Positions 21,940 to 64,000 of a stretch of DNA of 64,000 nt are shown piece by piece. Under the pieces are notes generated by a model that was given only the letters and a program-made list of their open reading frames with translations, did no database searches and was not told the DNA's origin. Where the stretch lies: contig JBLDXI010000064.1 of the NCBI GenBank assembly GCA_047495785.1, positions 744,001 to 808,000 of the forward strand, written 5' to 3'. Source of the DNA: Lepidodermella squamata. Taxonomy: Eukaryota; Animalia; Gastrotricha. A program made the position numbers and the translations under genes. Each line of letters begins with the position of its first letter. Positions within the stretch are counted from its first letter, which is position 1.

Positions 21940-23019
21940 TTAACAAGACGACATTGCTCGAATTGCTCCTCGCGACCTCAGCAAATCGACCACATCGGTA
22001 TTGTTTTTGCTGCTGTTGCAGATCGCTAAATCAAGAGCTGTTTCACGATTATCAAAAAGTCTGATATCCTTATTTGCACCTCTATCTAGCAACAGTCGAA
22101 CTGTTTCGACATGCCCATTCGAAGCAGTCTTCATCAACGCCGTATAGCCTTTGTTATACCTGGCCTCGATGGCAGCGTTGCGATCAAGTAACAGTCGTAC
22201 AACGTCGACTTTCCCATTCTGAAACGCCAACATCAACGCCGTATCGCCATCGTTATTCTTGGCCTCGATGGCAGCGTTGCGATCCAGCAACAGTCTAACA
22301 ACGTCGACGTACCCATTCTCAGCCGCCATCAACAACGCTGTCCAGCCAATGTTAGACTTGGCCTCGATGGCAGCCCCGCGATCTAGCAACAGCCGAGCTA
22401 CTTGGACTCGCCCATTCCTCGCTGCTAAAATCAACGCCGTCCAGCCATTATAATTATTCTTGGCCTCGATTGCAGCGTTGCGATCCAACAACAGCCGAAC
22501 TACTTCGACGTGCCCATTCTCAGCCGCAATCATCAACGCCGTCTTGCCATTGATGAATTCCTTGGCAGCGTTGCGATCAAGCAACAGTCGTACAACGTCG
22601 ACTTTCCCATTCTCAGCCGCCAACAACAACGCCGTATCACCATAGTTATTCTTGGCCTCGGTGGCAGCGTTGCGATCTAGCAGTAGTCGAACTACTTCGA
22701 AATGCCCATTAATAGCCGCCCACATCAACACCGTCCAGCCAAAATAATCCTCCTTGGAATTGACATCAGCTCCTCGATCGACGAACAGCTGAGCAATTTG
22801 CATTCGCTGGTCGGACTGCATCGGCATGCACGCAACGCTGTGCAGCAGGCTGCAATTTATGGTAGTCCAAGGAGCGCAGTGAATCTCCCTTGGGTCGCGC
22901 CAGTTCGGGTCGAATTCGCCGCCAGTGGATTCGTCGATCTCCGCAACGAGTTGCCGCACCTGCGCCACGTCGGCAGTGTCATGTGTCACATTCCACAACT
23001 GCTCGTACACTTCGCGGAC
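21940..23019 (-). CDS. Terminal ankyrin-array exon, unit 1 (N-cap, 7 internal repeats, C-cap)
   Basis: TALxxAAxxGxVEVVRLLLDRNAAIEAK repeats; no ATG; phase-0 acceptor tttag|GTC CGC GAA GTG. Confidence 0.85.
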   Translation of the reverse strand, partial: VREVYEQLWNVTHDTADVAQVRQLVAEIDESTGGEFDPNWRDPREIHCAPWTTINCSLLHSVACMPMQSDQRMQIAQLFVDRGADVNSKEDYFGWTVLMWAAINGHFEVVRLLLDRNAATEAKNNYGDTALLLAAENGKVDVVRLLLDRNAAKEFINGKTALMIAAENGHVEVVRLLLDRNAAIEAKNNYNGWTALILAARNGRVQVARLLLDRGAAIEAKSNIGWTALLMAAENGYVDVVRLLLDRNAAIEAKNNDGDTALMLAFQNGKVDVVRLLLDRNAAIEARYNKGYTALMKTASNGHVETVRLLLDRGANKDIRLFDNRETALDLAICNSSKNNTDVVDLLRSRGAIRAMSSC

Positions 23020-26956: not shown

Positions 26957-27673
26957 ATGTTTGAGGCTTGCCAGAGTCTAGGGCTCAAAATAAATGTACC
27001 AAAAACCAAATTCATGGTTATTAACAAAGGAGATGAAATTGTTGAGCCTTTTATTATTTACAACGAACGACTGGAAGAAGTTAGTAGCTTCACATATTTA
27101 GGTAGTATAATTACCTCAGATGGAGCTTCAAAAAACGACATCAGGGCCAGAATAGAGAAAAGCTGCAAAGCTTTCGGTGCCTTGAAAAAATATATTTTTG
27201 GAAATAAATCTATTCCTATTAGCGTAAAAATGAAGTGTCTTCGAGGTACAGTAGAACCGGTTGCGAAATTTGAGGGTGAAAATTGGACGATGACCAGTGA
27301 GGATGAACGGCGACTGAACGTTTGTCAGATGCGATGCCTACGTAGCATTTGCGGTGTCACTCTGAGAGACAGAGTTAGGAATGATTATATTAGAGAGAAA
27401 TGTGAAACTCAAAAATTATCTTCGATAGTAGCAAGACATCAACTTAGGTGGTACGGCCATGTTGCTCGCATGGACCCCGAACGGCTAACCCACCGAGTAC
27501 GGTATTGGAACGTGCCGGAGGGTTGGAAACGGCCTAGAGGCAGACCTAAGCTAAGGTGGCTCGACTGTATTAAGAAAAATTTGGGGCGGGTGGGAATTCA
27601 AAATTTAGAGGATGCAGATGATCTAGCGAAGGACAGAAATGAGTGGAGGCTGAAAATTCTTAGTCTGGGGTGA
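26957..27673 (+). mobile_element. RTE-like LINE 3' fragment
   Basis: GLKINVPKTK, FTYLGSII, LRWYGHVARM, RPRGRPKLRW. Confidence 0.9.
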
Positions 27674-27763
27674 TGAATATGATTCTTCTCGAGGGTTTTT
27701 TTGCATATTTTGTATTACTGATGAAAAATGATTTCGGGTTGACTAGGATGAAAAATGAGTCAC

Positions 27764-29994
27764 CTTTTGCTTCACAGCTACCAGTCGCAGACCAGCTGCC
27801 GTTTGCCTGGCATTGAATTGTACCCTGGCCAACGAGTTTGAAGCCCGGATTGCACACCAATGTCATCGTGGATAAGTACGCTGTGGATCTGTTGGAGCTA
27901 GCCAAATAGCCGTTACTCAGTACAGGAGCGGGGCCGCAGTCTACATCACACTTATGGAGAATCAGTTAAGAAAAGTTGTTATTACTTACTTAATAGATTA
28001 CACCTGCCATTTATCACCGGTCGAAATGGAGGTACGCACAGGGCGATCGAAACAGAAGACGAATAGTTGTACCCAGGGTTGCATTTCACGCTAACAGCCC
28101 CTCCTCTTTCCACTGCAGCTCCAGGCCTCAGAACTGCGCCAGTATCTTCCGAAGTTTCCGGGTCCACTCGGGTCACAAATCCCGCCGATATGCTTGGTAC
28201 AGGGCAAGACTGCTCGGGTGTGCTCGTCTGGCTGCGAACATCTGCGTTGTCGGAAATCCGATCGAGAACTTTGCAGACTCTGCTGTAGATGCCAGGAATA
28301 TATCCGGTGCAAAACGCATCGCCATTCGAAATTATGCCAAGCAGGTAAATCTGTCTCGATTGCAAACACATGAGAGGGCCGCCAGAATCTCCGAAGCAAA
28401 CGTCGCTGATGCCCTCGGCGGCTAAACACATCTTCGAGTCGGTGATGGTGACAGATTCCGAGCGTATGCGGGAATACTCCATCGAGCAATTTCGGTACGA
28501 TCGAACTCGAAGATCCAGCTTCCTCGGAGTCTCAGATATTATAGCTGAAATATCAGAAAGCATTTTGGCTATGTAACAACACCGGAATTTTCTATATACA
28601 GCATTCATTCGAAAAGGGCTGCATAAACGTCACACCTGCGATTAATCGACGCGAAAGTGTAACTTCGGCATGATTATAAACTAGCAAGAAAGACCATATG
28701 TGAATAATCCGTTTCCAAATCCGATCTCTTTTCTACCTTAGCTTGATCTAAATTTGATATGGGATAAATTTGTACGGGTTCGACCTTACGTAGACAGAAG
28801 GGTAGAGTTAGGACCCAGTCATGCGCATTGTCCATGGATCTTGTCTATCAGATCGATACTAGGTCATAAAAACTGCAATTTTGAACGAATACATAGTCTG
28901 CCTTTTTGATCTAATGCTCTAGGACTACCGGTTACCAGCTGGGCCATGTGGGCCTCAGAAAAATCTCTTCGGACCTGCCTAAGTTTCCCTTCCCTCAAAA
29001 CATCTTTCCGAGCTGGCCGGAATGATTCTTCAAAACCAATCTACACGATACAGCATACCAGTTCAGATTTCTTCATAAGTCTCTAAATTTTACACGTTTT
29101 CATGCACTAGGAAATTTGGGAGACTATTAAAAAATAAATAATATCTAAAAAGATAATTAATACAAAAATAAATAATAATAAATAATCTCTCTCTCTCTCT
29201 CTCCCTCTCTCTCAGCTCTTTCTTAAAAATAAATTACTGTGTACATTAGAACGTCATTTATGGTTGTTCTTTGTACACTATAAACTAAAGTACAGAGGAA
29301 TTTGAGCATACTGCTTTTAAAGTAACCCCAGCCAACTGCAACCGCTGAATCGCATCCGTCAATTGAATTCGCGGTGACAGAGTTGGCTCGGCACATGGTA
29401 GCCGCGTCAGGCAAACAAATCGGTTTGACTTGCTGCGAGAATCTGGGAACTGGGGTCGTCAGTCGCAGCAGAGCAAAATCAAAGTCGTGGAAATTCTGAC
29501 TGCCGTTGTAAAGTGGATGCACCAAAGTGGATGCCACGAGAGATTCGTAAGAGCCAGCCTCAAAACGAACATTGACGTTATGGCGACCAATCAGCGCTTT
29601 GATACTGTAAAAATGAAAAATATTACATCGAACAGGTAGTAAATGAACACTTCCACGAACAAAGTCGGAGTCTTGCCAGCATTCCAAACGCAATGAGCAG
29701 CTGTAATCAGCCATTGCTTCGAGATGAGAGAAGCTCCACAGTAAGACGCTGAAGTTTCGCCACTTTGGTAAATTTCAAGAAAAACCTAGAACAAGCATCC
29801 TGCTTGTTTAGCATTAATATTAAATGGAAGCGAACCAGCCACGGAAACTCGTGCTCTCCTGCTGGTTGACTGCCTGTTGATTTCGCCATTTGTGAAGGGT
29901 TCATGACACCGCATCCGATCGCATTATCTTGAGCAACGACTAATCCAGATACCAGGACAAGAAAGCCGATTATCAAAGCTGTTAGGTAACGCAT
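27764..29994 (-). CDS. Secreted trypsin-like (S1) protease plus CCP domains, unit 1; exons 29994-29836, 29785-29661, 29604-29312, 28544-27990, 27940-27764; third CCP exon not found
   Basis: Signal peptide, TAAHC, DFALL, GDSGGP, two Sushi-like modules; intron phases match unit 2. Confidence 0.8.
29186..29213. repeat. (CT)n microsatellite in protease intron 3
   Basis: Direct reading. Confidence 0.9.
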
Positions 29995-30430: not shown

Positions 30431-30559
30431 CTTAAATGTATCATTCATCACAGATCGCTTCGCTAATTAGATCCCAGTGAACCCTACACTAGAATTTACT
30501 AGAGATAGAACGGTATATATATATCCATATTGGCATTGTGGCCAAGGCTCGAAATCGTA

Positions 30560-30720
30560 GAGCGGAGTTTCTCTCATCTCGAAGCAATGGCTGATAACAG
30601 CTGCGCATTGCGTTTGGAATGCTGGAGAGACTCCGACTTTGTGCATGGAAGTGTTCATTTACCTCTTTGATGGTATATTTTTCATTGGCATAGTATCAAA
30701 GCGCTGATAGGTCGCCATAC
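30560..30720 (+). pseudogene. Inverted protease remnant (exon 2, intron, start of exon 3)
   Basis: SLISKQWLITAAHCVWNAGETPT, then IKALIGRH, on the + strand. Confidence 0.8.
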
Positions 30721-32632: not shown

Positions 32633-32705
32633 GCCGAGATAGCTCAGTTGAGAGAGCGTTAGACTGAAGATCTAAAGGTCCCTGGTTCGATCCCGGGACT
32701 CGGCG
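32633..32705 (+). tRNA. tRNA-Phe(GAA)
   Basis: Near-canonical eukaryotic Phe sequence; one D-loop change and one acceptor-stem mismatch. Confidence 0.85.
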
Positions 32706-32776
32706 TATTACGTTTTGCGTCATCTCCGGCCTATACTGATTGGTATACCTGCAGCCCACGATGACTTTACAACGCA

Positions 32777-32847
32777 GGCCCTTTAGTCTAGGGGTATGAT
32801 TTCGCTTCGGGTGGGAGAGGTCTCGGGTTCAATTCCCGAATGGTCCC
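32777..32847 (+). tRNA. tRNA-Pro(CGG), degenerate
   Basis: gtctaggggtatgatt..cgcttCGGgtg..gggttcaattccc, followed by oligo-T; several stem mismatches. Confidence 0.7.
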
Positions 32848-32923
32848 ACTTTTTTTTCTTCATTTTGAATTCCAACAAGCCATTGGAAATTCATCGCATA
32901 ATCTAAGTATTTATCTTCACATC

Positions 32924-32995
32924 TCCTTGATGGTCTAGTGGTTAGGATTCCGCGCTTTCACCGCGGCGGCCCGGGTTCGATTCCCGGTCAGGGAA
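32924..32995 (+). tRNA. tRNA-Glu(TTC)
   Basis: Intact cloverleaf with A and B boxes. Confidence 0.92.
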
Positions 32996-33062
32996 AGTTT
33001 TGCTCTGAAGTTAGCGTTTTGCTGAAATTTAAAATCGCTGGGTCTCGCAAAAAGTCGAGAAA

Positions 33063-33133
33063 AGCTCACGGTGGATTGAACTCTCAATCTTCTGCTTACT
33101 AGGCAGACGCTCTATCACTAAGCTACTCACCTC
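33063..33133 (-). tRNA. tRNA-Thr(AGT), degenerate
   Basis: tctgc-ctAGTaa-gcaga arm, gagttcaatc; poor acceptor stem. Confidence 0.6.
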
Positions 33134-33224
33134 TTGGCTTATATACCGGCCATTCAGGTCCGTATTTTAAATGCGCAAGCTGAAGATTAGGGCAGTTTGT
33201 CTTGTTCTACGGCAAAAAGTATTG

Positions 33225-33297
33225 TGGAGGATACGGGCGTCGATCCCGTTACCTCTCGCATGCTAAGCGAGCGCTCTACCATTTGAGCTAATCCCCC
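33225..33297 (-). tRNA. tRNA-Ala(AGC)
   Basis: gggggattagctcaaatggtagagcgctcgcttAGCatgcgag...; intact. Confidence 0.92.
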
Positions 33298-33384
33298 TTA
33301 CGTCTGAATCAACACCAACGTTAACAAAGCTATTCTATATTCTAAACAATAACGTAAAACTGGCAGTAAGTTTCTAAAAAGCTA

Positions 33385-33430
33385 GCGGCTTCTGGGAGAC
33401 TCGAACCCCCGACTCTGCGATTAATTTGTA
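33385..33430 (-). pseudogene. tRNA 3'-half remnant, isotype unclear
   Basis: gggggttcgagtctccc T-arm, followed by oligo-T. Confidence 0.4.
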
Positions 33431-33534
33431 TACCCGCATCATACTGGAGGACAGAGTTCGATACTCTGCCAGGAAGATAGTTTTTTTCCAAAGTATTGAA
33501 GCTGAACCCTGCGATTTTGCCAAAAATGTACAGC

Positions 33535-33607
33535 CGCCCGATGTAGGGCTGGAACCCACGACCCTGGGATTAGGAGTCCCATGCTCTACCGACTGAGCTA
33601 ACCGGGC
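33535..33607 (-). tRNA. tRNA-Lys(CTT)-type body carrying a CCT (Arg) anticodon
   Basis: gcccggttagctcagtcggtagagcatggga-ctCCTaa-tcccagggtcgtgggttccagc; B-box substitution. Confidence 0.7.
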
Positions 33608-36766: not shown

Positions 36767-39700
36767 TCAACAAGACGACTTTGCTCGACTTGCTCCTCTC
36801 GACCTCAGCAAATCGGCCACATCGGTTTTGTTTATGCAAATCGCCAAATCAAGAGCTGTTTTGCCTTCTGTATTTGCGACATCCTTATTTGCGCCTCTAT
36901 CAAGCAACAGTCGAGCTACTTCGACTTCTCCACTCCGAGCCGCAATCATCAACGCCGTCCAGCCATCGTTATCCTTGGCCTCGATGGCAGCGTTGCGATC
37001 CAGCAGCAGTCGAACAGCTTCGACTTGCCCATTATAAGCCGCATGTATCAACGCCGTCCAGCCACTGTTATCCTTGGCCTCGATGGCAGCGTTGCGATCC
37101 AGCAACAGTCTAACTACTTCGACTCCCCCATACCGAGCCGCATGTATCAACGCCGTCCAGCCACTGTTATCCCTGGCCTCGATGGCAGCGTTGCGATCCA
37201 GCAACAGTCTAACTACTTTGACTTGCCCATTCAAAGCCGCATAGATCAACGCCGTCATGCCATTGTTATCCTTGGCCTCGATGGCAGCGTTGCGATCCAG
37301 CAACAGTCGAGCTACTTCGACTTGCCCATACAAAGCCGCAAGCATCAACGCTGTCGTGTTATCTTTATCCCTGGCCTCGGTCGTAACGTTGCGATCCAGC
37401 AACAGTCGAGCTACTTCTAATCGGCCATTCCGAGCAGCAGCCATCAACGCCGTCATGCCATCGTTATTCTTGGCCTCAATAGCAGCCCCGCGATCAAGCA
37501 GCAGTCGAGCTACTTCGACTTGCCCCCAACTAGCCGCAAACATCAACGCTGTCTTGTTATTGTAATTTTCCTTTAAATTCACATCGGCTCCACGATCGAC
37601 AAACAGCTGAGCGATCTGCAATCGCTGGTCGGATCGTGTCCAATTGCACGTAACACTGTGCAGCAGGGTGCCATTTGTCACATAATTCCAATTACCACAG
37701 TAAGTCGTATTTGGGTTGCGCCAGTTCGGCTCGAATTTGCCGCCTGTGGCTTCGTCGATCTCCGCAACGAGTTGCCGCACCTGCGCCACGTCGGCAGTGT
37801 TAAATGTCACATTCCACAACTGTTCGTACACTTCACGGACCTAAATTTAAAAAGACATTAGAAAAATGACGCAATAGAAAATAGATAAAAAAGACTGCGT
37901 AAATAATCCACTACATATTTAGCATACTTATTAATAATTACTAGCATAACAGACGCCCTGGTATCTATCGAAAATCGAAAAACTCGGAAAGGCTATGCAG
38001 GCGACAACGCCACACGAGATGCGAACAATGGTCAGCGAGGCGAACGTTAAGGTTAGCACGCATGCTCCCGTTAGGTCCCGCTACTTCTCTCACTGATATG
38101 CATGTGCATATCCTTCCGCGCCAAACGAAATTTGTTAAATCGGTATTGCGGCATAAAAACTGCTTTTGATTGACCATCCATTTCATTGTTTTAAACTAAT
38201 AATCACCACTAAAGAAAAGGGAACAACACGGCGAAAGGCGGCTAATGTAGACAATTCAGCCAATTAAAGTAGTAAGACAATTGCTAAGTAAGGCACTTGG
38301 TTTCAATAAAATCTCGAGAAATCGATTGAGATACGGCCTGAAAACTGAAAATTATAATGAGCTACTATTCACTCATCATTGGCTTGTATCAGATAGATCT
38401 CCTCAGCTTCAATGAATTCATCGTGTTCTCCTACAACACATTCACATCTTTGGCAGAGCTTTGGATTTGATTTACATTGTAGTCCGGCTTTGCAGGGTCA
38501 AAGTCCATTTTATTCATCACATGTGTTTTTATCGTTTATATAATGTGCCACTGGTGGTGCGGTCGTGAGGTGGCGAGGTGGTATTTTTTTGTACTCTTGC
38601 CTCACTGTTGTCAAATGATTTACCCCATTTATGCACAATAATAATCGCGCCTTGCCGTATGTGTACCATAAAAGTCCGCCCCACATTCATACTGACCTGA
38701 GCTATCGCAAATGATAATGGGCTTTTATAATCAAAACAACGCAAGTCGCGTCTTCTAATTACCCCTGATGTGACACAAAAAGCAGTTGCGACGACAGGAA
38801 AATACGATATATATGATATAAAATGGGTAAACTGTGTGTTTTCGTTTTGTAAAATGCCCGCTGCTTACAGTTTTGAGGTGAGCGTTGACTTGGACTCGAT
38901 AAAGCACCGTTTGGAGCGGATGCCAGCTTCGATTACTGATGTGCAGATTCGTACTCGTAGAGCGCGAGCTGAATTGGCGCAGACTCTTGCTTTGAAGACT
39001 CTACCTTCTACATGGCCATTTTCGCAGATAATGAATGGGGCCATTATGAAATCGGCCAAATTAACCATCGAGTATGATGACATTGGGGTTGTGGAAATCG
39101 AAGTACCCAGCGAAAAGCCAGCTAAATCTAGGGAAAGCGCAAACAATCGTGCTAAAAGGTTATAGAAATTGTCAAGTTATCGAATTTTATTAAATATTTA
39201 TTACTCTAGTCTCGTGATTCTGGGATTGCGTTACGGAATTAACGCCAGCAAGTTGCTAGCAATGCGTCGTTCCATTGGTTTCGAGTCAGTGTCAAAAGAT
39301 TTATTCTATAAAGTTAGGAACGAGCTGGCTGTTTTGCACCCTATAAGCACGATAAGCGACGGAAAGGCGGCTTTCCGATCGGTATTTTCGCTTGCCAGTA
39401 CTTGGGCCCGTAAAGGTGAGTTGAAACCGTCGGTCACTAACGACATTCGACTCCAGGTATAAATAAATTAAAATTCGAGGTAGAATTGAAACTTTATAAG
39501 TGACTGTTTAAGGTGGATGGGATGGCGAGCCGGACGAATTACGCTGACCCCCTTGTCACCGCCTATGTCTGTGTGGCGAGCAGGAAAAGGAAAGCCGGGA
39601 TCGATAATGAAGACCAATTGGCTGTCTATAATGATAACGAGTCAGCGAGTAATTTTCGAGAATATTTACAACCCCCTGTCGACGAGCTTGTAAAACTGGT

Positions 39701-42700
39701 CGAGCAAGGCATAACAGTCGACGGAAAAAGCTACAGTTTCAGACTGCTGACCTGCTGTGATTACCCGGCGCTGGTAAAAATATTTGGCTGTGGTCATCAG
39801 TCGAGTGAAAATCGTTGTGTTATTTGCGAGATGAGCGTCTGAAACCCAACTTTGCCAGCTAAAAGACGCAAGTTCGATGAATATTCGGCCGAAATGGCTG
39901 GGAAGCTGGGGTGGTCGGAAGATTTCGGGCCTATGATTCGGCTAAGCGAGGACAAATTGCTGATAATACCGGACTTCTTCCATCTTCAAGTCAATATTGC
40001 GAAACCACTGATTACCCAGGTTAGCATAGCAAGCGGAAAACTCTTCGAAAAGACATTTCATCCGAAAAATAACTTTAGGTTCTCGGAAAGTTGAGAGCGT
40101 TCAGTCAACGCGAAGCAATCAAAAAAGTCATCGAATTCTTGAAGATTGGGTCGAATTACAAATCATCAGCGGCTTCTTCAAGACGGATCAAGCGAACTCC
40201 GAAAAACTCGAAGCTGTCTATTGACGTCCGCCGAACTTTGAAGGGGAAAGTCAAAGTCAGCATTAAAAATTCGAATCACTACGGCGTTGTTCAGGTAGAA
40301 TTGTGGTAGAGTGAAAATAAAACTTAATTTTGGATTTAAAATTTCAGGCATTCAAGCGATTTACTGAACATATGAGCCAAAATTCGTTGACTGATGCGTT
40401 TTTCTTGCCAAAAAATTGGCAGAGAAAGAAAGTTTTCGGAAAAGTGAAGTCATCTGCCCGAATCAAAGAAAACGACTTTCTTACTTCTTTAGCCGGTCTT
40501 CGGAAGCTTTGCATCGCATCATGTGCCGCGTTTGACGATATCAAGGAAAATCGGAAAAAAGGAAAGGGCAAGTTCTTCATGCCGCGTTATGCATCGCTCT
40601 GGAAGACGCATGTTGGTCCTGTCACGTCATACGCACATCTCCTTTCGAGCCACACATACGAGCTGTTGAAACGAAATATTAATCTGGCCGCTTTGTCCGC
40701 TGAAAGCATCGAACTACTCATCAAAGAGCTGCGCGCAACAGTTAGCAGTCAAACTTCTAATTTCTGGCCGTTGTCTTCTCAGCTCATGAGAATTCAGAAC
40801 ATGAAAGACAATCTGAAAATTTGATACTTCAATTTTGTCAGCTTTACTTCTCATTTCAAGTTTTAATTTTTAAAAGTAAAATTCGAAAATGTAGAAAGAA
40901 TGTTTTTTATTCAGCCTCTACTCTTGAACTCATCATCATCAGATAACACGGCAAAATATCATCTTTTCGTGTACACATACTCATCTCGAGCTCGATCGAA
41001 ATGCAATTCATATTTATCTTGTGCGGACCAGACGAAAGAAAAAAGCCCGGCTCGGCAGAGCTCATCGAGTTTCGAAATTTGCCGGCAGATTGCGTTTTGG
41101 CTTCTGCCAAGTTCAGCATCAAGGTTTTTATCGGACAGAGTAATCCGCATCCAGAATTTTAATAAGCTTTTGGGAGCAGTCGCCAATTTACCGCGTTTCG
41201 TGTAGAAGGCGAACACATGTCGCAATCGATTCCGGTCGCTAAAGGTCCACTCAACGCGTGAATTCGCGGCATGAACTATATAAATTCGGACTATTTAGGA
41301 CTCTCAGTGTCAAGTATTTCCAGATACTAACCTTTGTCAAACCGCTTTGACACCGCCCTGATGTAGTTCCAAGAGCCATAACTTGCCGTAGAAACCGAAG
41401 AGTCGAGCGTTGTATCGCTGATTTCGATGGGCTCGATTTGCTCGGCTTGATGCGCGCCTGCTTGTTCCTGCTGTCCAAATTCCTCATGAAGAAACGATTC
41501 ATCGCCTTCATTTTCCGATAAACCGGTTTCAGACTGCTGATTATTTTTCGATTTGGCGAACATTGATCGAATATCGGCCTGTTTTTCAAAGCGATTGTGC
41601 TGTTGTTGCTGATGATGAGCAGCTCTGCGCTCACTCCTGCGTTGCCTTTTTCGCCGATTGCGTGATCGCGATTTCGCAGTTTCACTCATTTTATTCAGAT
41701 GAATTTCGCAAATAGCTCGAAAAACGAATGGCTTTACGACTGATAAAAATAACAAGTGAACGACTGCACGACCTCACCACCGCACCACCAGCGCGCATAG
41801 CTAAACATAAGACTACTACACACATGATATATAGCAATAATAATTGCACATGAATCATCTAGGTCACTCTGCAAAACCCGGACTTGTATGTAATTTGATT
41901 TACCGCTTAAAACACGGGCCTCCTTCAATTAATCAAGATCAATCGTTGTCCCACGCTAGTACGGGACTAAATCAATCAAATCAAATCATGAAATAGGGAA
42001 CCTTAAGACCATTAAATTAAGACCTTGAGGCCATTAAATTCGTTTAGCGCCTGAATACCGTATTTTATTGAATAGTATCTCGGGTTATCATTTTTTCTGA
42101 ACACGAAAAGTAGTAAAAATATCGGGTAATTATTTGAGGGGGCTTTTGTTTAAGGCAGGCTATTATTTATTCTAAAACGTGAAATCATCACTTCAACCGA
42201 CATTTTTAGTCATCAGCTTGAATATACTCCTCTTTCCTCTTTGGCGCAGTAATTAAGCTTGAATCACCGTAGTTACCGTCCTCGATTTCGCAGTTTCTCT
42301 TCTCTACGCCCCAATGTTTTCTTCTGGCACGCTAGCCACCTCTCCCATTCTTTCCTTGAGCTGATCACACGAGACACTAGACCTATGTGGTATGTGGCTA
42401 TTTACCTCTGGACCCAATATTGGATGCATTTTGGGCCTATTTTTGTTTTCGGAGACAGCTTTTTGCAAAGCTTCGAGCGACTGCGAAGTGAATTTGACGG
42501 AACAGCCCAATTTGCACTTGCATTTTGTCAGCTGAGCTACGGTTTCGAATAACCAACCCTGTTTACTTCAAACTAATTCCTCTCTAACGTGCGTAACTCC
42601 CAATCTCAATCGTTTGGTCTCTTCAACGAACCAGCGGTTCTGTCGATTTGGACGTATAGGGATTACATTCCAGAAATCTTTTTGATCAGCTTTACGAAGT

Positions 42701-44980
42701 ATTTCATCTTTCAACGTGTACTCGTTTTCGCGACTGAAAGCCCACTCTCCCTGCTACAACAATGTCGACTAATGGCTTGCAGTATTCGCCAGTCACATCG
42801 AAAATCGTCGAAAAACATGTAACATCTGCGGCGAGGCGCCTCGAAATCACATACTGCTGATCATAGAAATGTACCATTTGCTAACTGTTCATAACAATTT
42901 GCAATTTGCAATTGACCGGAATAGATGCTTCACACCGGAGCTATTTGCCACAATCATTTCGGAAACTCGAATAAGCAAATGAAGCAAAGTGCGAAGAGAA
43001 AATTTCGCAAACAGTGGCGCTTCGCTCTTAGCAGCAGTCTTCCGTTTGGCATAATAATCTAGATATGTTGACAATTACTGGAATGAGGCTGGAAGATCTC
43101 GTGTTCTTTTTACTCTGATTTCACTGATTTCACATTCCACTATTGTAACACTATGTCGACTTAACCTACGACAAGTTTCATTTAGTGAAAAACTTACAGG
43201 TCTTCGCTGACTCGAGACGCAGGAACCAGGCTGGGACCAGGTTGCGTTCAAGAGGCACGATACGGCAGCATTTCCTCGGAGCTCGAAATTCGGGTTGCAT
43301 GATATGGATCGAGTGGCTCCGACGCTCGTCAGACCAGGAGATACACCGCCATTTTGTATCGTAGGCGGCTGTCCACAAACTTTATACGGTAATTTGTTAG
43401 AAGAATCAACAGTGAGTGGAAAATGAGTCACCTGCTGTTTCACAGCTCCCAGCTGCAGACCATGTGCCGTTTGCTTGGCACTGACTTGTTCCCAGGCCAA
43501 TGACTTTGAAGCCTGGATTGCAGACCAACGTCATTGTGGACAAGTACGCTGTCGATCTGTTGGAGCTCGTCAAATAGCCGTTACTTATTACAGGGGCGGG
43601 GCCGCAGTCTTCATCATACTTGTGGAGAATCAGTTTAGAAGAGTTGCTATTACTTACTTAACGGGTTACACCTGCCATTTATCAGCGGTCGAAATGGAGG
43701 TACGCACAGGGCGATCGAAACAGAAGACGAATAGTTGTACCCAGGGTTGCATTTCACGCTAACAGCCCCTCCTCTTTCCACTGCAGCTCCAGGCCTCAGA
43801 ACTGCGCCAGTATCTTCTGATGTTTTAGGATCCACTCGGGTCACAAATCCCGCCGACACGTTAGGCACGGGGCAAGACTGCTCCGGAGTACTCACGGTAG
43901 TCTGGCTTCGAACATCTGTGTTGTCGGAAATCCAATCGAGAACCTTGCAGACTCTGCTGTAGATGCCAGGAGTGTATCCGTTGCATGAATCATCGCCATT
44001 CGAAATAATGCCTAGTAGGTAAATCTGTCTCGATTTCAAACACATGAGAGGGCCTCCAGAATCCCCGAAACAGACGTCGCTGTCGTCGGCGGCAAAGCAC
44101 ATCTTCGAATCTGTGATGGTGACCGCGTCAGAGCGGCCTCGCGAATATTCCATTGAGCAGTTTCGGTACGATCGAACTTGAAGATCCAGCTTCCTCGGGA
44201 TCTCTGATAATCTGGCTAGAATACAAGAGACAGATTAGAAAAACGTAGAACGGGGCTGGAATGATGTCAAATTGACAAAACATACTGTATGCAAAGTGTC
44301 CCCAGCCAACGGCAACTGCTGAATCGCATCCGTCGATCGAATATGCAGTGACAGAGTTGGCCCGGCACATGGTTGCTGCGTCGGGCAAACAAATCGGTTT
44401 GATCTGCTGCGAGAATCTGGTAACTGGGGTCGTCAGGCGCAGAAGAGCGAAATCAAAGTCGTAGAAATTCTGACTCCCTTTGTAAAGCGGATGCACTAAT
44501 GGAGGCAGCGACACGAGAGATTCGTAAGAGCCCGTCTCAGACCGGAAACTGATATTGTGGCGACCTAGTAGGGCTTTGATCCTAGGCACAGATAAGAGAT
44601 TGGACCATCAAACAGGGCAAAACAACGGGAAAATCTTACAAAATCGGAGTTTCTCCGGCATCCCAAACACAATGCGCAGCTGTAATCAGCCATTGCCTCG
44701 AGATGAGAGAAGCTCCGCAGTACGAAGCTGATGTTTCACCGTTTTTGTACATTTCAAGAAAGACCTATGGCGACATCCTGTTTGTGTTAAATTGCATTAA
44801 CATTGTATTGAAACAAACCAGCCATGGGTAGTCGTTTGGTCCTGCTGGATGGCTGCCAGGGCCTCGCGATTTCGCCATAGCCGTGGGGTTTACAGCACCA
44901 CATTCGGCATTGTCTTGAGCAAAGACTACTCCGGATACCAGCCCAAGGAAGGCAATTATCCTAGCTGTAACAAGGTGCAT
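36767..44980 (-). CDS. Predicted signal peptide-trypsin-CCPx3-ankyrin array protein, unit 2 (~857 aa); exons 44980-44819, 44764-44640, 44581-44286, 44215-43658, 43608-43432, 43379-43198, 37840-36767
   Basis: All six introns GT-AG with compatible phases; total 2574 nt, open; catalytic H/D/S intact; the last splice across 5.4 kb is inferred. Confidence 0.7.
38854..40824 (+). pseudogene. RAG1/Transib-like DDE transposase (~583 codons); exons 38854-39158, 39210-39456, 39513-40019, 40079-40294, 40348-40824; one in-frame TGA at 39840
   Basis: Ordered motifs VDGM, CCDYP, CVIC, DFFH, YAHLLSSH, SAESIE resemble RAG1 core CDGM, GYDEK, CTLC, DALH, YFHKTLAH, SEGNE. Confidence 0.65.
40959..41689 (-). CDS. 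Unknown 224-aa protein, convergent partner of the transposase; exons 41689-41332, 41275-40959
   Basis: Phase-1 intron joins two ORFs in frame; basic NLS-like N-terminus, acidic linker, helical C-terminal domain (EWTFSDRNRL). Confidence 0.6.
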
Positions 44981-48579: not shown

Positions 48580-50720
48580 ATCTTTCGTCCAGAGCAATTC
48601 GGCTTCACGCCAAGAGTGGAACGAGGCGCAGCCGAGTGTAACGAGTGCGGAGACGAGTTTCAACGTTTCCTACTTTTTCAGGCCACTTTTTCTGCCTACT
48701 GTTTATTGAACGTAGTATCGCCAACCAAGAGACTCATTCTTCGTGCGGCGAGTGTAACACACACACACAGACGAACACACTGTGTTAGCAATAATGCGTG
48801 CGTTGCAAAACTAGCACGAATTTGGCGTGGTTGCAGCGATTTCAGTAAATTGGATACGCTCTCGAAGTTGGTAATAATTTCTATGAGCTAAGCGTGTTCG
48901 GCAGGTGCTAGTTGATGCTCAATTACAGCAGCAAATTTGATTAAAGTGAGGTGAAAAACTTGCGTAACTCAGTCCCTGAAAATTAGAAGCCGTGCTCTAA
49001 TAATGTTAGATCACTCGTTTTGATACTAATCTCGAAAACGCTCCTTAACGGCGGATTTTTTTCTAATTACGCGTTTTCTCGATTAGAATCAAAACTCGGT
49101 GTTCTAACATATATTAGAAACATGTACGCAGAAAATAAGCTATTTTTGAGGTTGAAGGCGTCGATATGGTTTAGCAACCCGATCACGTCGAATGTAGGCG
49201 TGCGGCAGGGCGACCCGCTCTCCCCGCTCTTATTTTGCATATTCATAAACGATTTGATTCCTCATCTAATGAAAGTCTTCCCGGGACTAACCTTCAGAGA
49301 ATACGTGATTTTAGCGATACTTTACGCAGACGACCTCGCGTTGATGGCGGAGAGCCCGGAACAATTACAACTAATGCTAGATGAACTTCAAGCGTATGCA
49401 TGTCAGAATTCGCTTAAAATTAACGTAGAGAAAACGAAGATTATGGTTTTTGAAAAGAGATTCTCAGAAAAATTCGATTTCAATTTTTATCTGAACGGAG
49501 AAAAGCTCGAAAAAGTTAAAGAATTTAAATACCTAGGTGTTTATTTTACCCATAACCTGAATTTTGATAAAATGGTTGAGGTTGTCAATGCGAACACGAA
49601 AAGAATATCTGCTATGCTACCAAATTTGATCGAAAAATTAACACCTTATCTACCCCCTAACACTTTTAATTTGTTATACAACTCCTACCTTGTCGGAAAC
49701 TATACCTACGGAGGTGGTTTCTGGGGTCAAACGAAGAAATCAAAAGTTTTCCCTTTCAATACACATTTCGTTAAACAACTCTGTCGCTTGCCTTCATCGG
49801 CGAGAGATGAGCTGGTTAAACGTGAATTTTACCTCGAACCCCCATCTTTGATTTTAACAAAGGCGGCCGTTCGGTATTTTTTGAGACTGAAATTCGAGGA
49901 CAAACACGTACTTTTGAAAACAGCTTTCCAAACTATTGATTCAAATAAAAAATTATATAAACATATATTTATGAATTTGACTGACGACGTGAATAAATTA
50001 GGAGGAGAGGAAATCTTTGAAGCCACTTCTCAATTTGAGGGTCTTGCCCTACTTGCGAAATGGTTTGAAAGATGGGTGAACGACGACAAATTGTCGACAA
50101 TCTCCTCCTTAAAAACATTATACCAAAATCCGGTATATACCGATGAAAATTATAACAAATTATTGCTATACTCCAGTACTAGGAAAGCTTTCTGGTCGAT
50201 GAAAAACATTCAAACTTTAGCTACGCTCCGAACTAACTCTATTCATAAACCTTTCTGTTATATAAATAATTTTGGTATTAAATGTATTTTCTGTTTCAAA
50301 TTCAGCGATGATCTTCTTTCTTCCGTCAAAGTTTATCTAGATGCGACCGACCTCTTAACTCACCTGTACACTGATTGTAAGCATACTCCGTATTACAAAA
50401 ATAATATTGATGACAATTCTGACGATACTATTGTCGACCCGAAAGATATCTACGAATCAATCAACTGCTGTAAATCTGTGAAAAATGTAAATTTATCTAG
50501 AATAATATCTTTAGCTCATCTCTATCGTACAACGCTAAAATCTACTGTGTATCCACCCGTCGCTATTTTCGAAACAACGTAATACCTCGATAATTATAAA
50601 CTATAACTAATATATAATAATCTACAATTATCATTACTTGTAATCACGTGCGAAGTGGCACTTTGATGTGTGCGCCCAAAGCCCACCCGTGGCCGGTGCT
50701 TTATATAATAACCTAAAGAA
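48580..50720 (+). mobile_element. Non-LTR retrotransposon ORF2 (RT plus C-terminal CxxC..HxxxxC), 5'-truncated and interrupted at 48612-49110
   Basis: RPEQFGF, GVRQGDPLSPLLF, LYADD, FKYLGV. Confidence 0.9.
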
Positions 50721-50903
50721 TAAAAATACACAGCTTATATAATAACCTAAAGAATAAAAATACACAGCTTGCTACCACGCAATCAGTGCAGGTTATCGAC
50801 AAAAATGTGTCATACGCATGCGATCAGAAGTCAACACGTGGCATTTAAAGTCGACTGAAGCGTCGATGAGCGTGAGCAGAACGATAATCTGAATTCACTT
50901 ATC

Positions 50904-53900
50904 TTGAAATTGTATCGAACCGGCAATAGGGCCCTGTACGTTAAAAAACAGAAGCAAGCAATCTCTGAGCATTTATCATTTTTCGACGACGAATGTCAAA
51001 CCAAACGCGAATTAATTAGAAAATCCAGGAAATTAGCTCTTAGACATCCTTCAAATCCGCTATACAAAGCTGATATGGACAGACACGAAGTAGAATATAG
51101 ACAGTTACTCCGCTCGAAAAAAGAACAGCATGAAGGTAGACTGCAAGCGGAGGCCGTAGAATTTGCCGAATTAATTGAGACACACCCAGCCGACTTTTTC
51201 AAACTAGCAAAAGAACTAGATCGCCTGAAGAGCATTGAAACCAACGTCGAGATGCCTGATGCCAGCGAAATAATTAGCTTTTTCAGTCAGCTTTTCACCG
51301 CGTCAACAACGGGGCCGGCTAGCCCTACGTCTCCAACAGCTGCGGCACGGGCAACGAACGACCCACATGACCTAGCTCTCGTAAAACCAGTATCAGTAGT
51401 AGAAATTGAATTAATTGTAGCTAAAGCTAAATCCAGTTCTAGTGCGGGTATAGACCAGATTGACTACGAATGTCTGAAATTAGACGGCTGTAAGCGAGGA
51501 CTATATCCCTTCCTAGCAGTTTTATACAGGGTGTTTCAGAACTCGCGCACTATATGAATAGCATGCGGCAAATGCGCGCGCATTGTTATGCGCTTATACT
51601 ATTATACGCGTATACTATTTTACCTATAAATGTACTACACACTACTGTAGTCAGCGTATAAAATATGCGTAATACATAAATGTACAGCATACATAATAGC
51701 ACTGCCGCACTTTTTTTCTGGCGGAAACCTTCGAGCCTCGATAAATTTGAGCCGAGTTTCATTAAATATCTTTTTTATTTCGAGGATGATGTCATGTTTT
51801 TCTGTAACGTGCTGATAGATTGGACTCTGAAGCGAGAGGATTCGAAACAATTTCTCAATTTCCGCGGCTGGATATTTCAGAAAATGATGATTTCTGAGAA
51901 AATTCTGATTTTACTTGATGTTGAATTCGTTGAAAAATCTATCATTGATTAGTCTCCTGCCTTTGCATCATTATTTTTTTCACGTTGCGTGAATACAAGA
52001 CTTCGACTGCACAAGCTTAGCAAAAATGACGTAGTTTTAACCACTGGCATGAGTTCTACATCGAGTAAAGAACGAAAATCAAGATTTCAGGTTCATAACG
52101 TCGAATAAAGGCAGCGATTCCATTTCGTGGATAACTAATCAAAATTGTCACGAAATGACAGCCAAGAAATCTAGGACAAAATGATGGACAGTAAAGAACA
52201 ACAAACTCATGGCTAGAATTTTCATGATCATCCGAAAATCCGAGAAAAAGTGAAAAATTGACGTTTTCCAGACTTTAAGCTACGGCATCTCCGAAAGACC
52301 GAGGGTGACAATTACATTTTTTCATATCACAAGACAGCCAAAGATGTCCTCTACCAGGCTGGTTGGTCGCGCAAAAAGTCTATCCACAGGGTTCGCAAGG
52401 AATCGCATGTCAAATGTCACAAAAATCGACGTAGTTAGGCCGTTTTCAGCCGCAAACGGGTCATCTTTGCGACCATCCCTCTTGAGAGCCCGTGGATGGA
52501 TTTTTTATTTCTTGATATCGTTGGAAAGCCCAAGAACTGGTCTACAAGGCTGGTTGGTCGCGCAAAAAGTCTATCCACAGGGTTAGTGAGGAATTGCATG
52601 TCAAATGTCACGAAAAACGTCGTGGAGAGGCTGTTTAAGGTAACTTCAATGTTTTTGCGTCGATTATTATGCGAGTGGTAAACGAAATTTTCCCGTGGAA
52701 GCGACTGAGTTTCTGCTTACAAATTTTAGCTCACGGAAATGTTTAAACTCAATCAGAGTGTTGCAACATCACATTTTCTCACGACTTTCTTCACTTCTTC
52801 TCAATTTTTACTGCTCTTTTCAAGAGTGAATGATCGTGAAATAAAATTCATGGAATTAAACAACAGCAACGGATTAAAAATCACATCATCTGGAATAATT
52901 TTCATCGTATTTGTATTGCAAACCCGAAATTTATTCATAGCCGCATTAAAAGCCTGTCCTGTTAGAGGTTTCTTCATTGAGAAATCGGCAAATTTCCAGA
53001 TATTTTGCAAGAGCAAGTCTTATTGCCTAGCGATATCCCTATTAATGCAGCAGCGTTACGGTACATACGAGTTCGATTTGCGCATTTTATAATGCCCGCA
53101 TACCGCTTGCACGCCATATGGGAAGTATAACGCCAACTACATAGCATATACGCATTACCGTTTGCGCTAGCCGCGCCTTACACTATGCATCAATATAAAC
53201 ATAAGTATGTGCGCGGAATGTATGCGCAGCGCGCGCACGTTTACTCTGGATACCATGGCAACCATTTGCCGCAGGTTATTCTAGTGCGCAAGTTCTGAAA
53301 CACCCTGTATACTAAGATCCTGGAAACGGGAGAATACCCAGAATGCTGGCGCAAAGCATTGCTGATCCCCATCTATAAGAAAAACAGCCGACTAGATCCT
53401 AAAAATTATAGACCTATCTCACTTCTGTCCGTATTTGCCAAAATATTTTCAAGTATCCTAGAGAAACGCTTGCGAGAATGGTGCACGGCTAAAAATATAT
53501 TGCGACCCGAACAGTTCGGATTCACGCCAAAAATAGGCACAGTAGATGCGTGTACTCTATTCTACGCCATAGTGGCTTTTTACCTCACTAGGAAAAAGAA
53601 AGTATACGCTGCCTTCGTAGATTTTTCAAATGCGTTCGACAAAATTAGCCGTGCTCTCTTGATGAAGAAGCTCAGAAAAATAGGACTGCCTTCGTCCTTT
53701 ATTGAGGTGATTAGGAAGAAAAAATGTGATGAGTGATAAGGAGAAAAATCTATATAAACACATCTTCAAAAATTTACCAGAAGATGTTGAAAAATTAGGC
53801 GGAAAAGAAATTTTTAACGCTACATCTAAATTTGAGGGCCTAGCCCTGCTTGAGAGATGGTACGAGAAATGGGTCGAAAATGATAAATTTTCGACGGCCT

Positions 53901-55242: not shown

Positions 55243-56322
55243 TCAACACGTTGACGTCGCTCGACTTGCTCCTCTCGACCTCAGCAAATCGGCCACGTCG
55301 GCTTTCTTTGCGCAAATCGCGCGATCAAGAGCTGTTGTACCTAATGTTGCAGTGACGTCCTTATTTGCACCTCTATCCAGCAACAGTCGAACTACTTCGA
55401 CTTGCCCAAGAAGAGCTGCATACATCAACGCCGTCGAGCCACCGTTATCCTTGGCCTCGATGTCAGCGTTGCGATCCAGCAACAGTCGAACTACTCCGAC
55501 TGTCCCGTTCGAAACCGCCCCGATCAACGACGTCCAGCCAATGTTATCCTTGGCCTCGATGGCAGCGTTGCGATCCAGCAACAGTCGAGCTACTTCGACT
55601 TGCCCATACCTAGCCGCCTGCATCAACGCCGTCCTGCCGAAGCCATCCTTCGCCTCGATGTTAGCTCGGCGATCCAGCAACAGTCGAGCTACTTCGACTT
55701 GCCCATACAAAGCCGCCCACATCAACGCCGTCGAGCCATCATCAGCCTTCGCCTCGACGTCAGCGTTGCGATCCAGCAACAGTCGAGCTACTTCGACTTG
55801 CCCAAACAAAGCCGCATGCATCAACGACCTCCAGCCAATGTTAGTCTTGGCCTCGATGGCAGCGTTGCGATCCAGCAACAGTCGAGCTACTTCGACGCGC
55901 CCATTCTGAGCCGCATTCATCAACGCCGTCGAGCCATCTTTAGCCTTGGCCTCGACGTCAGCGTTGCGATCCAGCAACAGTCGAACTACTTCGACTTGCC
56001 CACTCTCAGCCGCCCACATCAACGCCGTCCTGTCCCTGGAATCTTCCTTTAAATTCACGTCGGCTCCACGATCGACAAACAGCTGAGCGACCTGCATTTG
56101 CTGGTCGGATCGTGTCTGATTGCATGTAAATGTAACACTATGCAGCAGGCTGCCATTAGTCACATGATACCAACCACCACAGTTAATCGCCTCTGGGTTG
56201 CGCCAGTTCGGGTCGAATTTGCCGCCTGTGGATTCGTCGATCTCCGCAACGAGTTGCCGCACCTGCGCCACGTCGGCGGTGTTTCTTGTCACATTCCACA
56301 ACTGCACGTACACCTCGCGGAC
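55243..56322 (-). CDS. Terminal ankyrin-array exon, unit 3
   Basis: Same N-cap/7-repeat/C-cap layout; phase-0 acceptor tttag|GTC CGC GAG GTG. Confidence 0.85.
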   Translation of the reverse strand, partial: VREVYVQLWNVTRNTADVAQVRQLVAEIDESTGGKFDPNWRNPEAINCGGWYHVTNGSLLHSVTFTCNQTRSDQQMQVAQLFVDRGADVNLKEDSRDRTALMWAAESGQVEVVRLLLDRNADVEAKAKDGSTALMNAAQNGRVEVARLLLDRNAAIEAKTNIGWRSLMHAALFGQVEVARLLLDRNADVEAKADDGSTALMWAALYGQVEVARLLLDRRANIEAKDGFGRTALMQAARYGQVEVARLLLDRNAAIEAKDNIGWTSLIGAVSNGTVGVVRLLLDRNADIEAKDNGGSTALMYAALLGQVEVVRLLLDRGANKDVTATLGTTALDRAICAKKADVADLLRSRGASRATSTC

Positions 56323-60100: not shown

Positions 60101-60510
60101 TCTGAGCGCGTAGAACTTATTTCCAAGTTCCTTTTTGACTTCGTCCTTAGCCTGTCTTATAACCTTCTTTTCGCTGTTGCGCTCCTCAACGTAATCGTCC
60201 CACAGTTTATTCAAATCTGCGCTAGTAGCAACGCCGAGTTCATCTAACCGTTTCCTTTCCTTCGCGAATAGTTTAAATTTCCGCTTTTTTGCCGCTGCTT
60301 TTCTCCTAGTTTTATTGCCCCACCACCTAGTTCGCTTACCATTTTTCCTAACTCGTTTTTTCCCGCAGATTTTTGCACTTTCCGCCTCCAGCGTCTTCAG
60401 TTTTAGCCACACATCCTCAGCTGAAGTTGTCCTATCTACGTCACTTAATTTCTGGTCCATCACCTGCTTCAATTTATTAGAAAAAGTTGGCTGTTCTAGC
60501 CGCTCATGAG
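57134..60510 (-). mobile_element. RTE-like LINE ORF2, frameshifted and interrupted
   Basis: KSPGLDEI, NYRGISL, DLEKAYD, GLRQGCPLSPLLF, FADD, LRWYGHVARM. Confidence 0.9.
57855..59120 (+). mobile_element. Internally deleted Mutator-like element with ~190-bp TIRs; ORF 58040-58879 has SWIM-like and OTU-like motifs
   Basis: Near-perfect long inverted repeats; CTC..C.H, GRPRK, GDGNCVYRS. Confidence 0.75.
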
Positions 60511-63364: not shown

Positions 63365-64000
63365 TAGCTCTTGGATCCGTGAGCTCACCCTGAAAATATG
63401 ACCCAGGCACTTTTCTGACGGGGGTCTGACAGAGCCTCTTCTTAGTGTTCATGGGAATCACGTTGATCAAGTTGGCCACCACGAAACACACTTCTGCGTA
63501 AATAAATATACATACTGCATAATGTACATATATCCTTGCGCTTTTGTAGCACCTTACGAAGAAGAAATTTGACAGCGAAAAAATCTTGATAAGTGAGCAG
63601 AGCGGGCTACAATTTCTGGTTTTGTTGCTGAATTTTTACAGCTGAGGATAGCCTAAAGATTAATTCAAATCAAATAATTTTCACGACTTTGCGGTTGGAA
63701 CAGGAATAGATGCTTCACGGGGTTCATAAAACCGGAGCTATTTGCCACAATCATTTCGGAAACTCGAATATGCAAATGAAGCTAAGTGCGAAGAGACGTC
63801 ATCTCGGTACTGGAGTCGAAGCAAGCCAAGAAAGAAAAAGAAAAGGCGGATCATATGGTGGAAAAAATCCTTAACCAGGATCTGTTGGAAATCTCTGGCA
63901 TCCCAGAAACCAACTGGCGAGAAGAGGTGCGAAAACTTATCCCGCAAGAAATCACGAGCTGGATGATAAAAGAAAGAAAAGCGGACGGTACGATCATTAT

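Follow-up and report, generated by a model that had tools for sequence, protein, structure and literature searches.

A candidate trypsin–CCP–ankyrin fusion gene and its ankyrin paralogues in the gastrotrich Lepidodermella squamata

The window analysed here is a 64,000-nt stretch of the Lepidodermella squamata genome (contig JBLDXI010000064.1, positions 744,001 to 808,000), and all coordinates below are those of the window, with a slash marking a splice or cleavage junction. At the locus of interest, herein locus B, a protease gene and an ankyrin-repeat exon lie on the minus strand. The protease gene (44980-43198) comprises six exons that encode 500 aa, made up of a signal peptide, a trypsin fold and, after a divergent CCP-like module, two clear CCPs. 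Its first five introns are all GT-AG and measure 54, 58, 70, 49 and 52 nt. Exon 1 (44819..44980) supplies the ATG, the signal peptide MHLVTARIIAFLGLVSGVVFA/QD, which carries V-F-A at -3 to -1, and a propeptide containing a single Cys, with R39 as a basic site and GPGS after it. This exon ends at a phase-0 donor, CTG/GTTTGT, and gave no Pfam match in a profile search, as expected of a leader. The trypsin fold begins in exon 2 (44640..44764), where TAAHC carries the catalytic His, and continues in exon 3 (44286..44581; Pfam Trypsin E 7e-06), where DFALLRL carries the catalytic Asp. Exon 4 (43658..44215; Trypsin E 3.6e-17) encodes the C-terminal half of the trypsin fold, with D189 and GDSGGP, together with CCP1. 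CCP2 forms exon 5 (43432..43608; phase 1-1; Pfam Sushi E 8.9e-10), and exon 6 (43198..43379; Sushi E 6.3e-11) encodes CCP3 and the linker SSQRRP, with a phase-0 end.

Exons 3 and 4 both exceed the cut-off of the S1A profile (PF00089), and the PDB sequence matches of the protease, obtained with exon 4, include chymotrypsin, HGFA and kallikrein. In the spliced product the triad His57/Asp102/Ser195 is intact (TAAHC, DFALLRL, GDSGGP). A secreted trypsin–CCP portion is well supported by the signal peptide with its V-F-A motif, the triad and D189, the last of which suggests Arg/Lys specificity; the Cys in the propeptide points to a tethered pro-segment. The Ile/Val-Val-Gly-Gly activation N-terminus is absent: numbered backwards from PW, R39 falls at position 15 and GPGS at positions 16-19, and the equivalent site of a second protease gene in the window (paralogue A, below) reads K/STGS. 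Because the activation N-terminus is non-canonical in both, protease activity is uncertain. Regarding the CCP modules, three had been proposed originally, of which CCP2 (39.3 bits) and CCP3 (42.9 bits) pass the Sushi cut-off of 20.7 (PF00084). CCP1 falls below it (E 0.057, 14.3 bits) and has no Trp, with four Cys, a CPxP start and a CNPGY motif, such that only the last two modules of the array can be taken as clear CCPs.

Exon 6 contains no stop and ends CCT/GTAAGT in phase 0, the consensus donor GTAAGT occupying 43197-43192. The original prediction that the third CCP exon closes at a phase-0 consensus donor, at 43198, is therefore borne out by the reading of the sequence. Its companion claim, that the gene has no natural terminal exon, was overstated: unspliced read-through (43075..43197, minus strand) adds a 40-codon tail ending in a TAA at 43077-43075, and introns of 47 or 58 nt past CCP3 would give tails of 6 or 9 residues. 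The read-through tail matches 0 Pfam families, and neither AATAAA nor ATTAAA occurs within ~1 kb past CCP3.

The ankyrin exon (36767..37840, minus strand) encodes 357 aa, opening at a phase-0 acceptor, TTTAG/GTC, and running through an N-cap, eight clear repeats and a C-cap to a TGA. The ankyrin profiles match it strongly (Pfam Ank_2 E 5.7e-66, Ank E 6.4e-64). The N-cap consists of two helices and a β-hairpin, with C48 and C65, and the C-cap contains C335 and the terminal C357. An AF2 model of the exon reached a pLDDT of 93.7 and superposes on ankyrin-1 with a TM score of 0.85 and an rmsd of 2.0; the exon is confidently predicted to form one complete domain, its fold starting at residue 2. An in-frame TAG lies directly upstream and codons 1-99 contain no ATG, the first Met being residue 100, which argues that this is not a first exon. 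The missing start codon, the upstream TAG and the phase-0 acceptor at 37840 were all seen as originally described.

Two further ankyrin exons with intact ORFs occur on the minus strand of the window, in paralogue A (21940..23019) and paralogue C (55243..56322), each with the acceptor found in B. The acceptor sequence AAATTTAG/GTCCGYGARGTGTACG is present in the window only at these three ankyrin paralogues, with 0 occurrences expected by chance. The three copies become similar ~35 nt upstream of the acceptor and are conserved as protein from codon 1 onward. The common acceptor and this conservation strongly support the view that another exon precedes the ankyrin exon. The three paralogues have four invariant cysteines, every one of them in a cap, and the internal repeats contain no cysteine; C65 and C335 both occupy repeat position 11, in the first and last repeat respectively. 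The B exon also contains 8 N-glycan sequons against 2.9 expected (P 0.0045), two of which are common to all three copies. Cap cysteines and sequon excess are hallmarks of the secretory pathway, and their presence favours a fusion with the secreted protease. All three ORFs are intact, the probability of neutral survival of an open frame being P ~0.01-0.05 per lineage. The dN/dS of the exon is 0.8-0.9 overall and 0.4-0.7 in the caps, and variation between repeats and paralogues centres on positions 1, 2, 3, 5, 10, 13, 14 and 16, which form the binding groove.

The surroundings of the three ankyrin exons differ. Paralogue A includes a protease gene (27764..29994, minus strand) with signal peptide, trypsin, CCP1 and CCP2, followed by a LINE fragment after the CCP2 donor; no CCP3 for it was found within the window. 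Order and strand, protease then ankyrin, are the same at A and B, and when the regions upstream of the two ankyrin exons were compared, the protease exons were the only conserved blocks. Since CCP3 is missing and the CCP2 donor is in phase 1, paralogue A is unable to make an in-frame fusion. Its ankyrin ORF is intact although A is out of phase in this way, and an AATAAA follows the ankyrin stop by 63 nt. At paralogue C the upstream region runs past the window; its nearest 4 kb are filled with sense-strand LINE sequence, and no protease was found upstream within the window.

Between the CCP3 donor and the ankyrin acceptor of locus B lies a putative intron 6 (37841..43197, minus strand) of 5357 nt, ~100 times longer than the other five introns of 49-70 nt. 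No other domain-coding exon was found inside it, and TM-like in-phase exons occur only as chance-level candidates that are not conserved. About 3.3 kb of the intron is identifiable insertion, and part of the remainder predates the B/C duplication. The insertion is DNA-transposon-like (38520..41826, plus strand, antisense to the gene), with degraded ORFs and inverted-repeat arms at 38551-38582 and 41760-41791 (32 nt, 81%). It gave a weak, below-cut-off match to Transposase_21 (E 2.8e-4) and no PDB relative such as RAG1, and a Transib/RAG1 identity, considered for this element, is unsupported by these results. Closer to the protease gene, starting 199 nt past the CCP3 donor, is a conserved block (42905..42999, minus strand) that is ~97% identical to 63688-63796, upstream of paralogue C, against ~83% for the B and C ankyrin exons, with a 12-nt in-frame indel; the sequence around it otherwise aligns poorly between B and C. 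The block has an ATG at 42957, eight codons (MIVANSSG) and then a phase-0 donor, GGT/GTGAAG, and both ATG and donor are present in the B and C copies. It is absent upstream of paralogue A, and neither RNA folding nor Rfam revealed a structure or family in it. It may be a first exon or a promoter belonging to the ankyrin gene itself, or else a regulatory element. The block opens small ORFs on the plus strand too.

Joining 43198 to 37840 gives 500 + 357 = 857 aa in frame, reading SSQRRP/VREVYEQLW across the junction, as originally predicted. Our best model, which we consider somewhat more probable than not, is that locus B is one protease–CCP–ankyrin fusion gene. The CCP3-to-ankyrin splice appears to be the most economical reading because it pairs an orphan donor with an orphan acceptor of matching phase on one strand with no domain exon between them, and because of the cap cysteines, the sequons and the lack of a poly(A) signal after CCP3; the nearest same-strand coding exon upstream of the ankyrin exon is the one that ends in a perfect GTAAGT, in matching phase and without a stop. 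In this model the phase-0 donor would be joined to the acceptor across 5.36 kb of intron, enlarged by the 3.3-kb transposon and older sequence, and the 857-aa product, having no membrane span, would be routed into the secretory pathway. Its ankyrin solenoid, probably N-glycosylated and stapled by a cysteine pair at each cap (expected to be C48-C65 and C335-C357), may then act as the target-binding module, the protease serving as effector and the CCPs as a semi-rigid spacer. Such a division of labour would fit the variation at canonical ankyrin binding-face positions. Against the fusion stand the size of intron 6, paralogue A with its missing CCP3 and mismatched phase, the conserved block and the alternative protease endings. 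Furthermore, the predicted product mixes extracellular with cytoplasmic-type domains and has no membrane span, a combination recognised as a mark of mispredicted fusions (MisPred rule 2, PMC3927609).

Alternatively, locus B may hold two genes, the protease ending just past CCP3, at the read-through TAA at 43075 or in a tiny terminal exon, and the ankyrin gene having its own promoter and a mini first exon, MIVANSSG, in the conserved block, with a 5.09-kb first intron and a ~365-aa cytoplasmic product. We regard this as unlikely. Long first introns are common, and candidate protease endings exist as described. The block itself speaks for two genes through its ~97% B/C identity, its retained ATG, the in-frame 12-nt indel and the phase-0 donor in both copies, but it is missing upstream of paralogue A, its GTGAAG donor is weaker than CCT/GTAAGT, and, as it also opens small plus-strand ORFs, its strand and role may be other than supposed here. 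Separate genes would remove the topological oddity of MisPred rule 2 (PMC3927609), at the price of giving no account of the paired cysteines in the caps or of the surplus of sequons, as the ankyrin protein would have no signal peptide. They would also require another, unseen partner for the orphan donor behind CCP3, which is a perfect one, and the stretch from CCP3 to the block holds no poly(A) signal.

The same difficulty with cap cysteines and sequons meets a further arrangement, in which the ankyrin exons stand alone and have a spliced leader added at the acceptor by trans-splicing, starting from the leader or a non-AUG codon, or are joined to a distant exon beyond the region. Its appeal is that the acceptor is kept in all three paralogues whatever lies upstream, A having no in-phase donor and C being LINE-filled. 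A spliced leader would, however, have to supply an in-frame AUG, since codons 1-99 contain no ATG and the coding sequence is conserved from codon 1, and an Rfam scan of the whole window returned 4 tRNAs only and no SL RNA; we consider this arrangement improbable. Equally improbable, in our judgement, is that the fusion is ancestral and that B, like A, is decaying, with a swollen, poorly spliced intron yielding at most a truncated protease–CCP protein. The ~100-fold enlargement of intron 6 with its 3.3-kb insertion, the loss of CCP3 in A and the overall ankyrin dN/dS of 0.8-0.9 would fit decay, but the B exons are all intact with consensus splice sites, the open ankyrin frames would be unlikely under neutrality, and the variation is focused at binding-face positions rather than evenly spread, the caps having a dN/dS of 0.4-0.7. 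A minor variant, in which a cryptic intronic TM exon produces a type I membrane protein, meets the chance-level frequency and lack of conservation of such exons.

In database searches, the whole ankyrin exon matched generic ankyrin proteins in the protein collection at ≤53% identity, and no Trypsin or Sushi domain accompanied the repeats in any of the 120 matches listed. N-cap residues 1-58 gave no protein match in the 197-626 aa range, and a metagenome scan with an N-cap alignment gave none. Residues 1-100, searched against 1.84 billion representatives, matched multi-repeat ankyrin proteins on residues 56-100 among the 150 matches listed, a query that included first-repeat residues and in which weaker N-cap-only matches may rank lower. 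Exon 4 had no match in the protein collection at E ≤ 1e-5. Overall, the protein collections searched yielded no relative with the N-cap, no fused protein and no protein from this genome itself, and the literature searched no description of a trypsin–CCP–ankyrin architecture.

The closest known parallels are C1r, C1s, the MASPs, factor B and Limulus factor C, likewise secreted chymotrypsin-fold proteases, whose CCP modules set the position of the enzyme with respect to a recognition part. In proteases of the C1r/C1s/MASP/factor B type the CCPs are N-terminal to the protease, and recognition relies on CUB, EGF, vWA or lectin parts or on partner proteins. Locus B, in contrast, has its CCPs on the C-terminal side of the protease and R/GPGS instead of R/IVGG as activation site, and CUB, EGF and vWA gave no Pfam match. 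We know of no mosaic protease of the complement or coagulation type with ankyrin repeats. Toxoplasma RON9 combines a signal peptide, six ankyrin repeats, one Sushi and a C-terminal TM segment, confirmed by cDNA, and is thus a case of ankyrin repeats and a CCP within one secretory-pathway protein (PMC3299665); it differs in being apicomplexan, in having no protease, a TM segment and another domain order, and in showing no detectable sequence kinship to locus B. The latrotoxins of spider venom, which are among the PDB matches of the ankyrin exon, also have long ankyrin arrays that act outside the producing cell, but they are pore-forming, lack a signal-peptide, CCP or protease context, and resemble the exon only in the generic ankyrin consensus.

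Ankyrin repeats are textbook cytoplasmic modules. Taken alone, locus B is of lower value, with an unproven join, an atypical intron and a concrete rival in the own first exon. A broader proposal, to which we give slightly less credence than even, is that the splice is real and that locus B belongs to a large lineage-restricted family exporting disulfide-stapled, glycosylated ankyrin solenoids, which would serve outside the cell as diversified recognition modules and in this case be linked by CCPs to a trypsin-like effector. If true, the export of ankyrins in fusion with CCPs and a protease by an animal family would widen the working range of the ankyrin fold and offer a candidate non-Ig, non-LRR recognition–effector system, an ankyrin-based counterpart to those built on LRRs or Ig domains. 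Such a family would give nature's own parallel to the engineered DARPins. These and the membrane-binding domains of ankyrin-R/B have consensus-like repeats and the same fold as the exon (TM 0.85 to ankyrin-1), but are artificial or cytoplasmic, and the β-hairpin N-cap and cysteine-bearing caps set the ankyrin exon apart from both.

The window is eukaryotic in character, with GT-AG introns of ~50–70 nt, LINE/RT fragments and tRNA genes. The protease-CCP part of locus B, the gene under study, comprises six minus-strand exons (exon 1, 44980–44819; exon 2, 44764–44640; exon 3, 44581–44286; exon 4, 44215–43658; exon 5, 43608–43432; exon 6, 43379–43198) which, after removal of introns of 54, 58, 70, 49 and 52 nt, give a 1500-nt coding sequence for 500 aa. 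The product opens with a signal peptide of typical form, whose hydrophobic core leads up to V-F-A|QD, after which comes a chymotrypsin-fold domain with Pfam Trypsin matches in exons 3 and 4 and PDB matches to chymotrypsin, HGFA and kallikrein. TAAHC, DFALLRL and GDSGGP are all found in this domain, and its residue 189 is Asp. It lacks the usual protease activation N-terminus; the site reads R39|GPGS (counted back from the conserved PW), and K|STGS in paralogue A. C-terminal to the protease lie two canonical CCPs, or sushi modules (Pfam Sushi, E 8.9e-10 and 6.3e-11), preceded within exon 4 by a four-Cys module. Of the three CCPs in the original prediction, two are thus clear, while the first is divergent, its weak Sushi likeness falling below the cut-off (E 0.057).

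As had been predicted, the third-CCP exon ends in SSQRRP at a consensus phase-0 donor, CCT|GTAAGT, without a stop. The claim that the protease gene has no natural terminal exon proved too strong: the unspliced frame runs for 40 codons to a TAA at 43077–43075, and acceptors 47 or 58 nt downstream of the donor would give short-intron endings with tails of 6 or 9 residues. Neither the read-through tail nor the two short-intron endings has a Pfam match. The ankyrin exon (37840–36767, minus strand) encodes 357 residues, consisting of an N-cap, eight clear 33-residue repeats and a C-cap. Its AlphaFold2 model (pLDDT 93.7) has a helix from exon residue 2 and an N-cap β hairpin at residues 41–58, and compares with ankyrin-1 at TM 0.85 and rmsd 2.0. 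The exon indeed lacks a start, with TAG directly upstream in frame and the first ATG at residue 100, and the proposed join of 43198 to 37840 is in frame, for a total of 857 aa.

Two further minus-strand ankyrin exons belong to paralogue A (23019–21940) and paralogue C (56322–55243) and are 68–73% identical in protein to that of locus B. The acceptor is identical at all three, its pattern, AAATTTAGGTCCGYGARGTGTACG, matching only these three places (0 expected by chance); at the DNA level, similarity sets in ~35 nt ahead of the AG, and the proteins are conserved from their first codon (VREVY). The ankyrin exons are therefore spliced, non-first exons. Upstream of ankyrin A, with strand and order as in locus B, lies a protease paralogue (29994–27764, minus strand), intact for signal peptide, triad, CCP1 and CCP2. 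CCP3 is absent from it, a LINE fragment following the CCP2 donor, and since this donor is phase 1, an in-frame fusion is impossible for copy A. Upstream of their ankyrin exons, A and B have nothing in common except the protease exons themselves, which speaks against any sizeable, conserved 5′ exon private to the ankyrin exons; ~200 nt of ankyrin 3′ flank are common to both. At ~760 nt, with a GA microsatellite and inserted sequence in it, intron 3 of the protease paralogue (29310–28546) is far longer than the 70-nt intron 3 of B, so that insertion-driven intron swelling recurs in the protease family. The duplication history also left behind an inverted, partial copy of the exon 2 region of the protease (30531–30717, plus strand; 67% protein and 77% DNA identity), immediately upstream of paralogue A.

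The reading frame is open in all three ankyrin exons; in simulations with substitutions only, an open frame survived with P ~0.01–0.05 per lineage. Pairwise dN/dS is 0.82–0.91 overall, ~1 in the repeat array and 0.4–0.7 in the caps. Variability, both within and between the three exons, falls at repeat positions 1, 2, 3, 5, 10, 13, 14 and 16, and positions 22–28 are nearly invariant. This variation fits a conserved scaffold with what may be a diversifying binding face, not decay. Comparison of the three paralogues shows four invariant Cys, each of them in a cap, while the internal repeats have none. C65 and C335 occupy repeat position 11 of the first and last repeat, respectively, and their putative partners in the adjoining extensions are C48 and the terminal C357. 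The exon of locus B is enriched in N-x-S/T sequons, with eight where 2.9 are expected (P 0.0045), those at residues 10 and 56 being common to all three copies. Judged by its cap Cys and sequons, the ankyrin exon seems adapted to the secretory pathway.

The putative 5357-nt intron contains an element bounded by inverted repeats (arms 38551–38582 and 41760–41791; ~3.3 kb), antisense to the gene, whose Transposase_21 match is sub-threshold and which has no PDB relative. Within this intron, B and C have two collinear blocks in common (41888–42010 with 60903–61027, 83% identity; 42905–42999 with 63688–63796, ~97% apart from one 12-nt indel), so part of the long spacer is older than the B/C duplication; the comparison reaches as far as the window edge, where the sequence upstream of C runs off. 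The second, conserved block is ~97% identical versus ~83% for the B/C ankyrin exons, and the sequence around it barely aligns. Folding predicts no RNA structure for this block and Rfam gives no match; its plus strand carries small basic ORFs.

On balance, we lean towards locus B being a single protease-CCP-ankyrin fusion gene, a reading built from sequence features. The splice would join an orphan perfect donor to a conserved, start-less acceptor on one strand and in matching phase, the CCP3 donor being without a nearby partner that gives a domain. No other domain exon was found between CCP3 and the ankyrin exon, and TM-like in-phase exons in the intron occur only at chance level (2 observed versus ~1 expected) and are not conserved. 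Neither AATAAA nor ATTAAA lies within ~1 kb after CCP3, yet in paralogue A an AATAAA stands 63 nt past the ankyrin stop. The suitability of the cap Cys and sequons for the secretory pathway points the same way. Against the fusion stand the length of its intron, ~100 times that of the others and accounted for only in part by the ~3.3-kb element, the out-of-phase copy A, and the pairing of extracellular with cytoplasmic-type domains in a protein that has no membrane span, a known mark of mispredicted fusions (MisPred rule 2, PMC3927609). Also counting against it, no relative of the N-cap and no fused protein was found in protein collections or metagenomes (one N-cap listing was swamped by generic repeats).

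The conserved block, the chief complication, supplies a concrete alternative, in which the ankyrin gene starts at a first exon of its own. On the gene strand, an ATG in it (42957) opens a run of eight codons, MIVANSSG, up to a phase-0 donor, GGT|GTGAAG, and both frame and donor are preserved in C despite the 12-nt insertion; the first intron would be 5.09 kb. Such a mini-exon supplies no signal peptide, however, and the block was not found near paralogue A; we consider this start rather unlikely. Joining of the ankyrin exon by trans-splicing or to a distant exon seems less probable still, trans-splicing likewise supplying no signal peptide. Just as little weight falls on locus B being a decayed copy, given that the ankyrin variation better fits a diversifying scaffold, or on a cryptic TM exon, given the chance-level, non-conserved candidates.

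Known here from sequence, the locus B gene would in its working mode most resemble the complement/coagulation mosaic proteases. Their defining order places the CCPs before the protease, whereas in locus B the CCPs follow it. No protease of that group is known to carry ankyrin repeats, which the fusion model of locus B has. The original prediction came with no known family of this architecture, and literature searches gave no Trypsin-Sushi-Ank description. In the cDNA-confirmed Toxoplasma RON9, a secretory-pathway protein with a signal peptide, ankyrin repeats coexist with a Sushi domain, but RON9 differs from the locus B model in having a TM segment and no protease (PMC3299665).

Elsewhere in the window, a plus-strand tandem array (1260–21500) comprises at least 10 paralogous genes for multi-pass membrane proteins with a common N-terminal motif, DRGFNGSRPYFIGWFHDLS; neither of the two members tested has a Pfam match. 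Four tRNA genes (Rfam), two on each strand, form a convergent cluster at 32633–33607. LINE/RT fragments with RVT_1 matches lie at 6828–7637, 26957–27700, 49020–51557 and 57134–60472, those upstream of ankyrin paralogue C in sense orientation, and an OTU-like ORF (58040–58879) is found among them.
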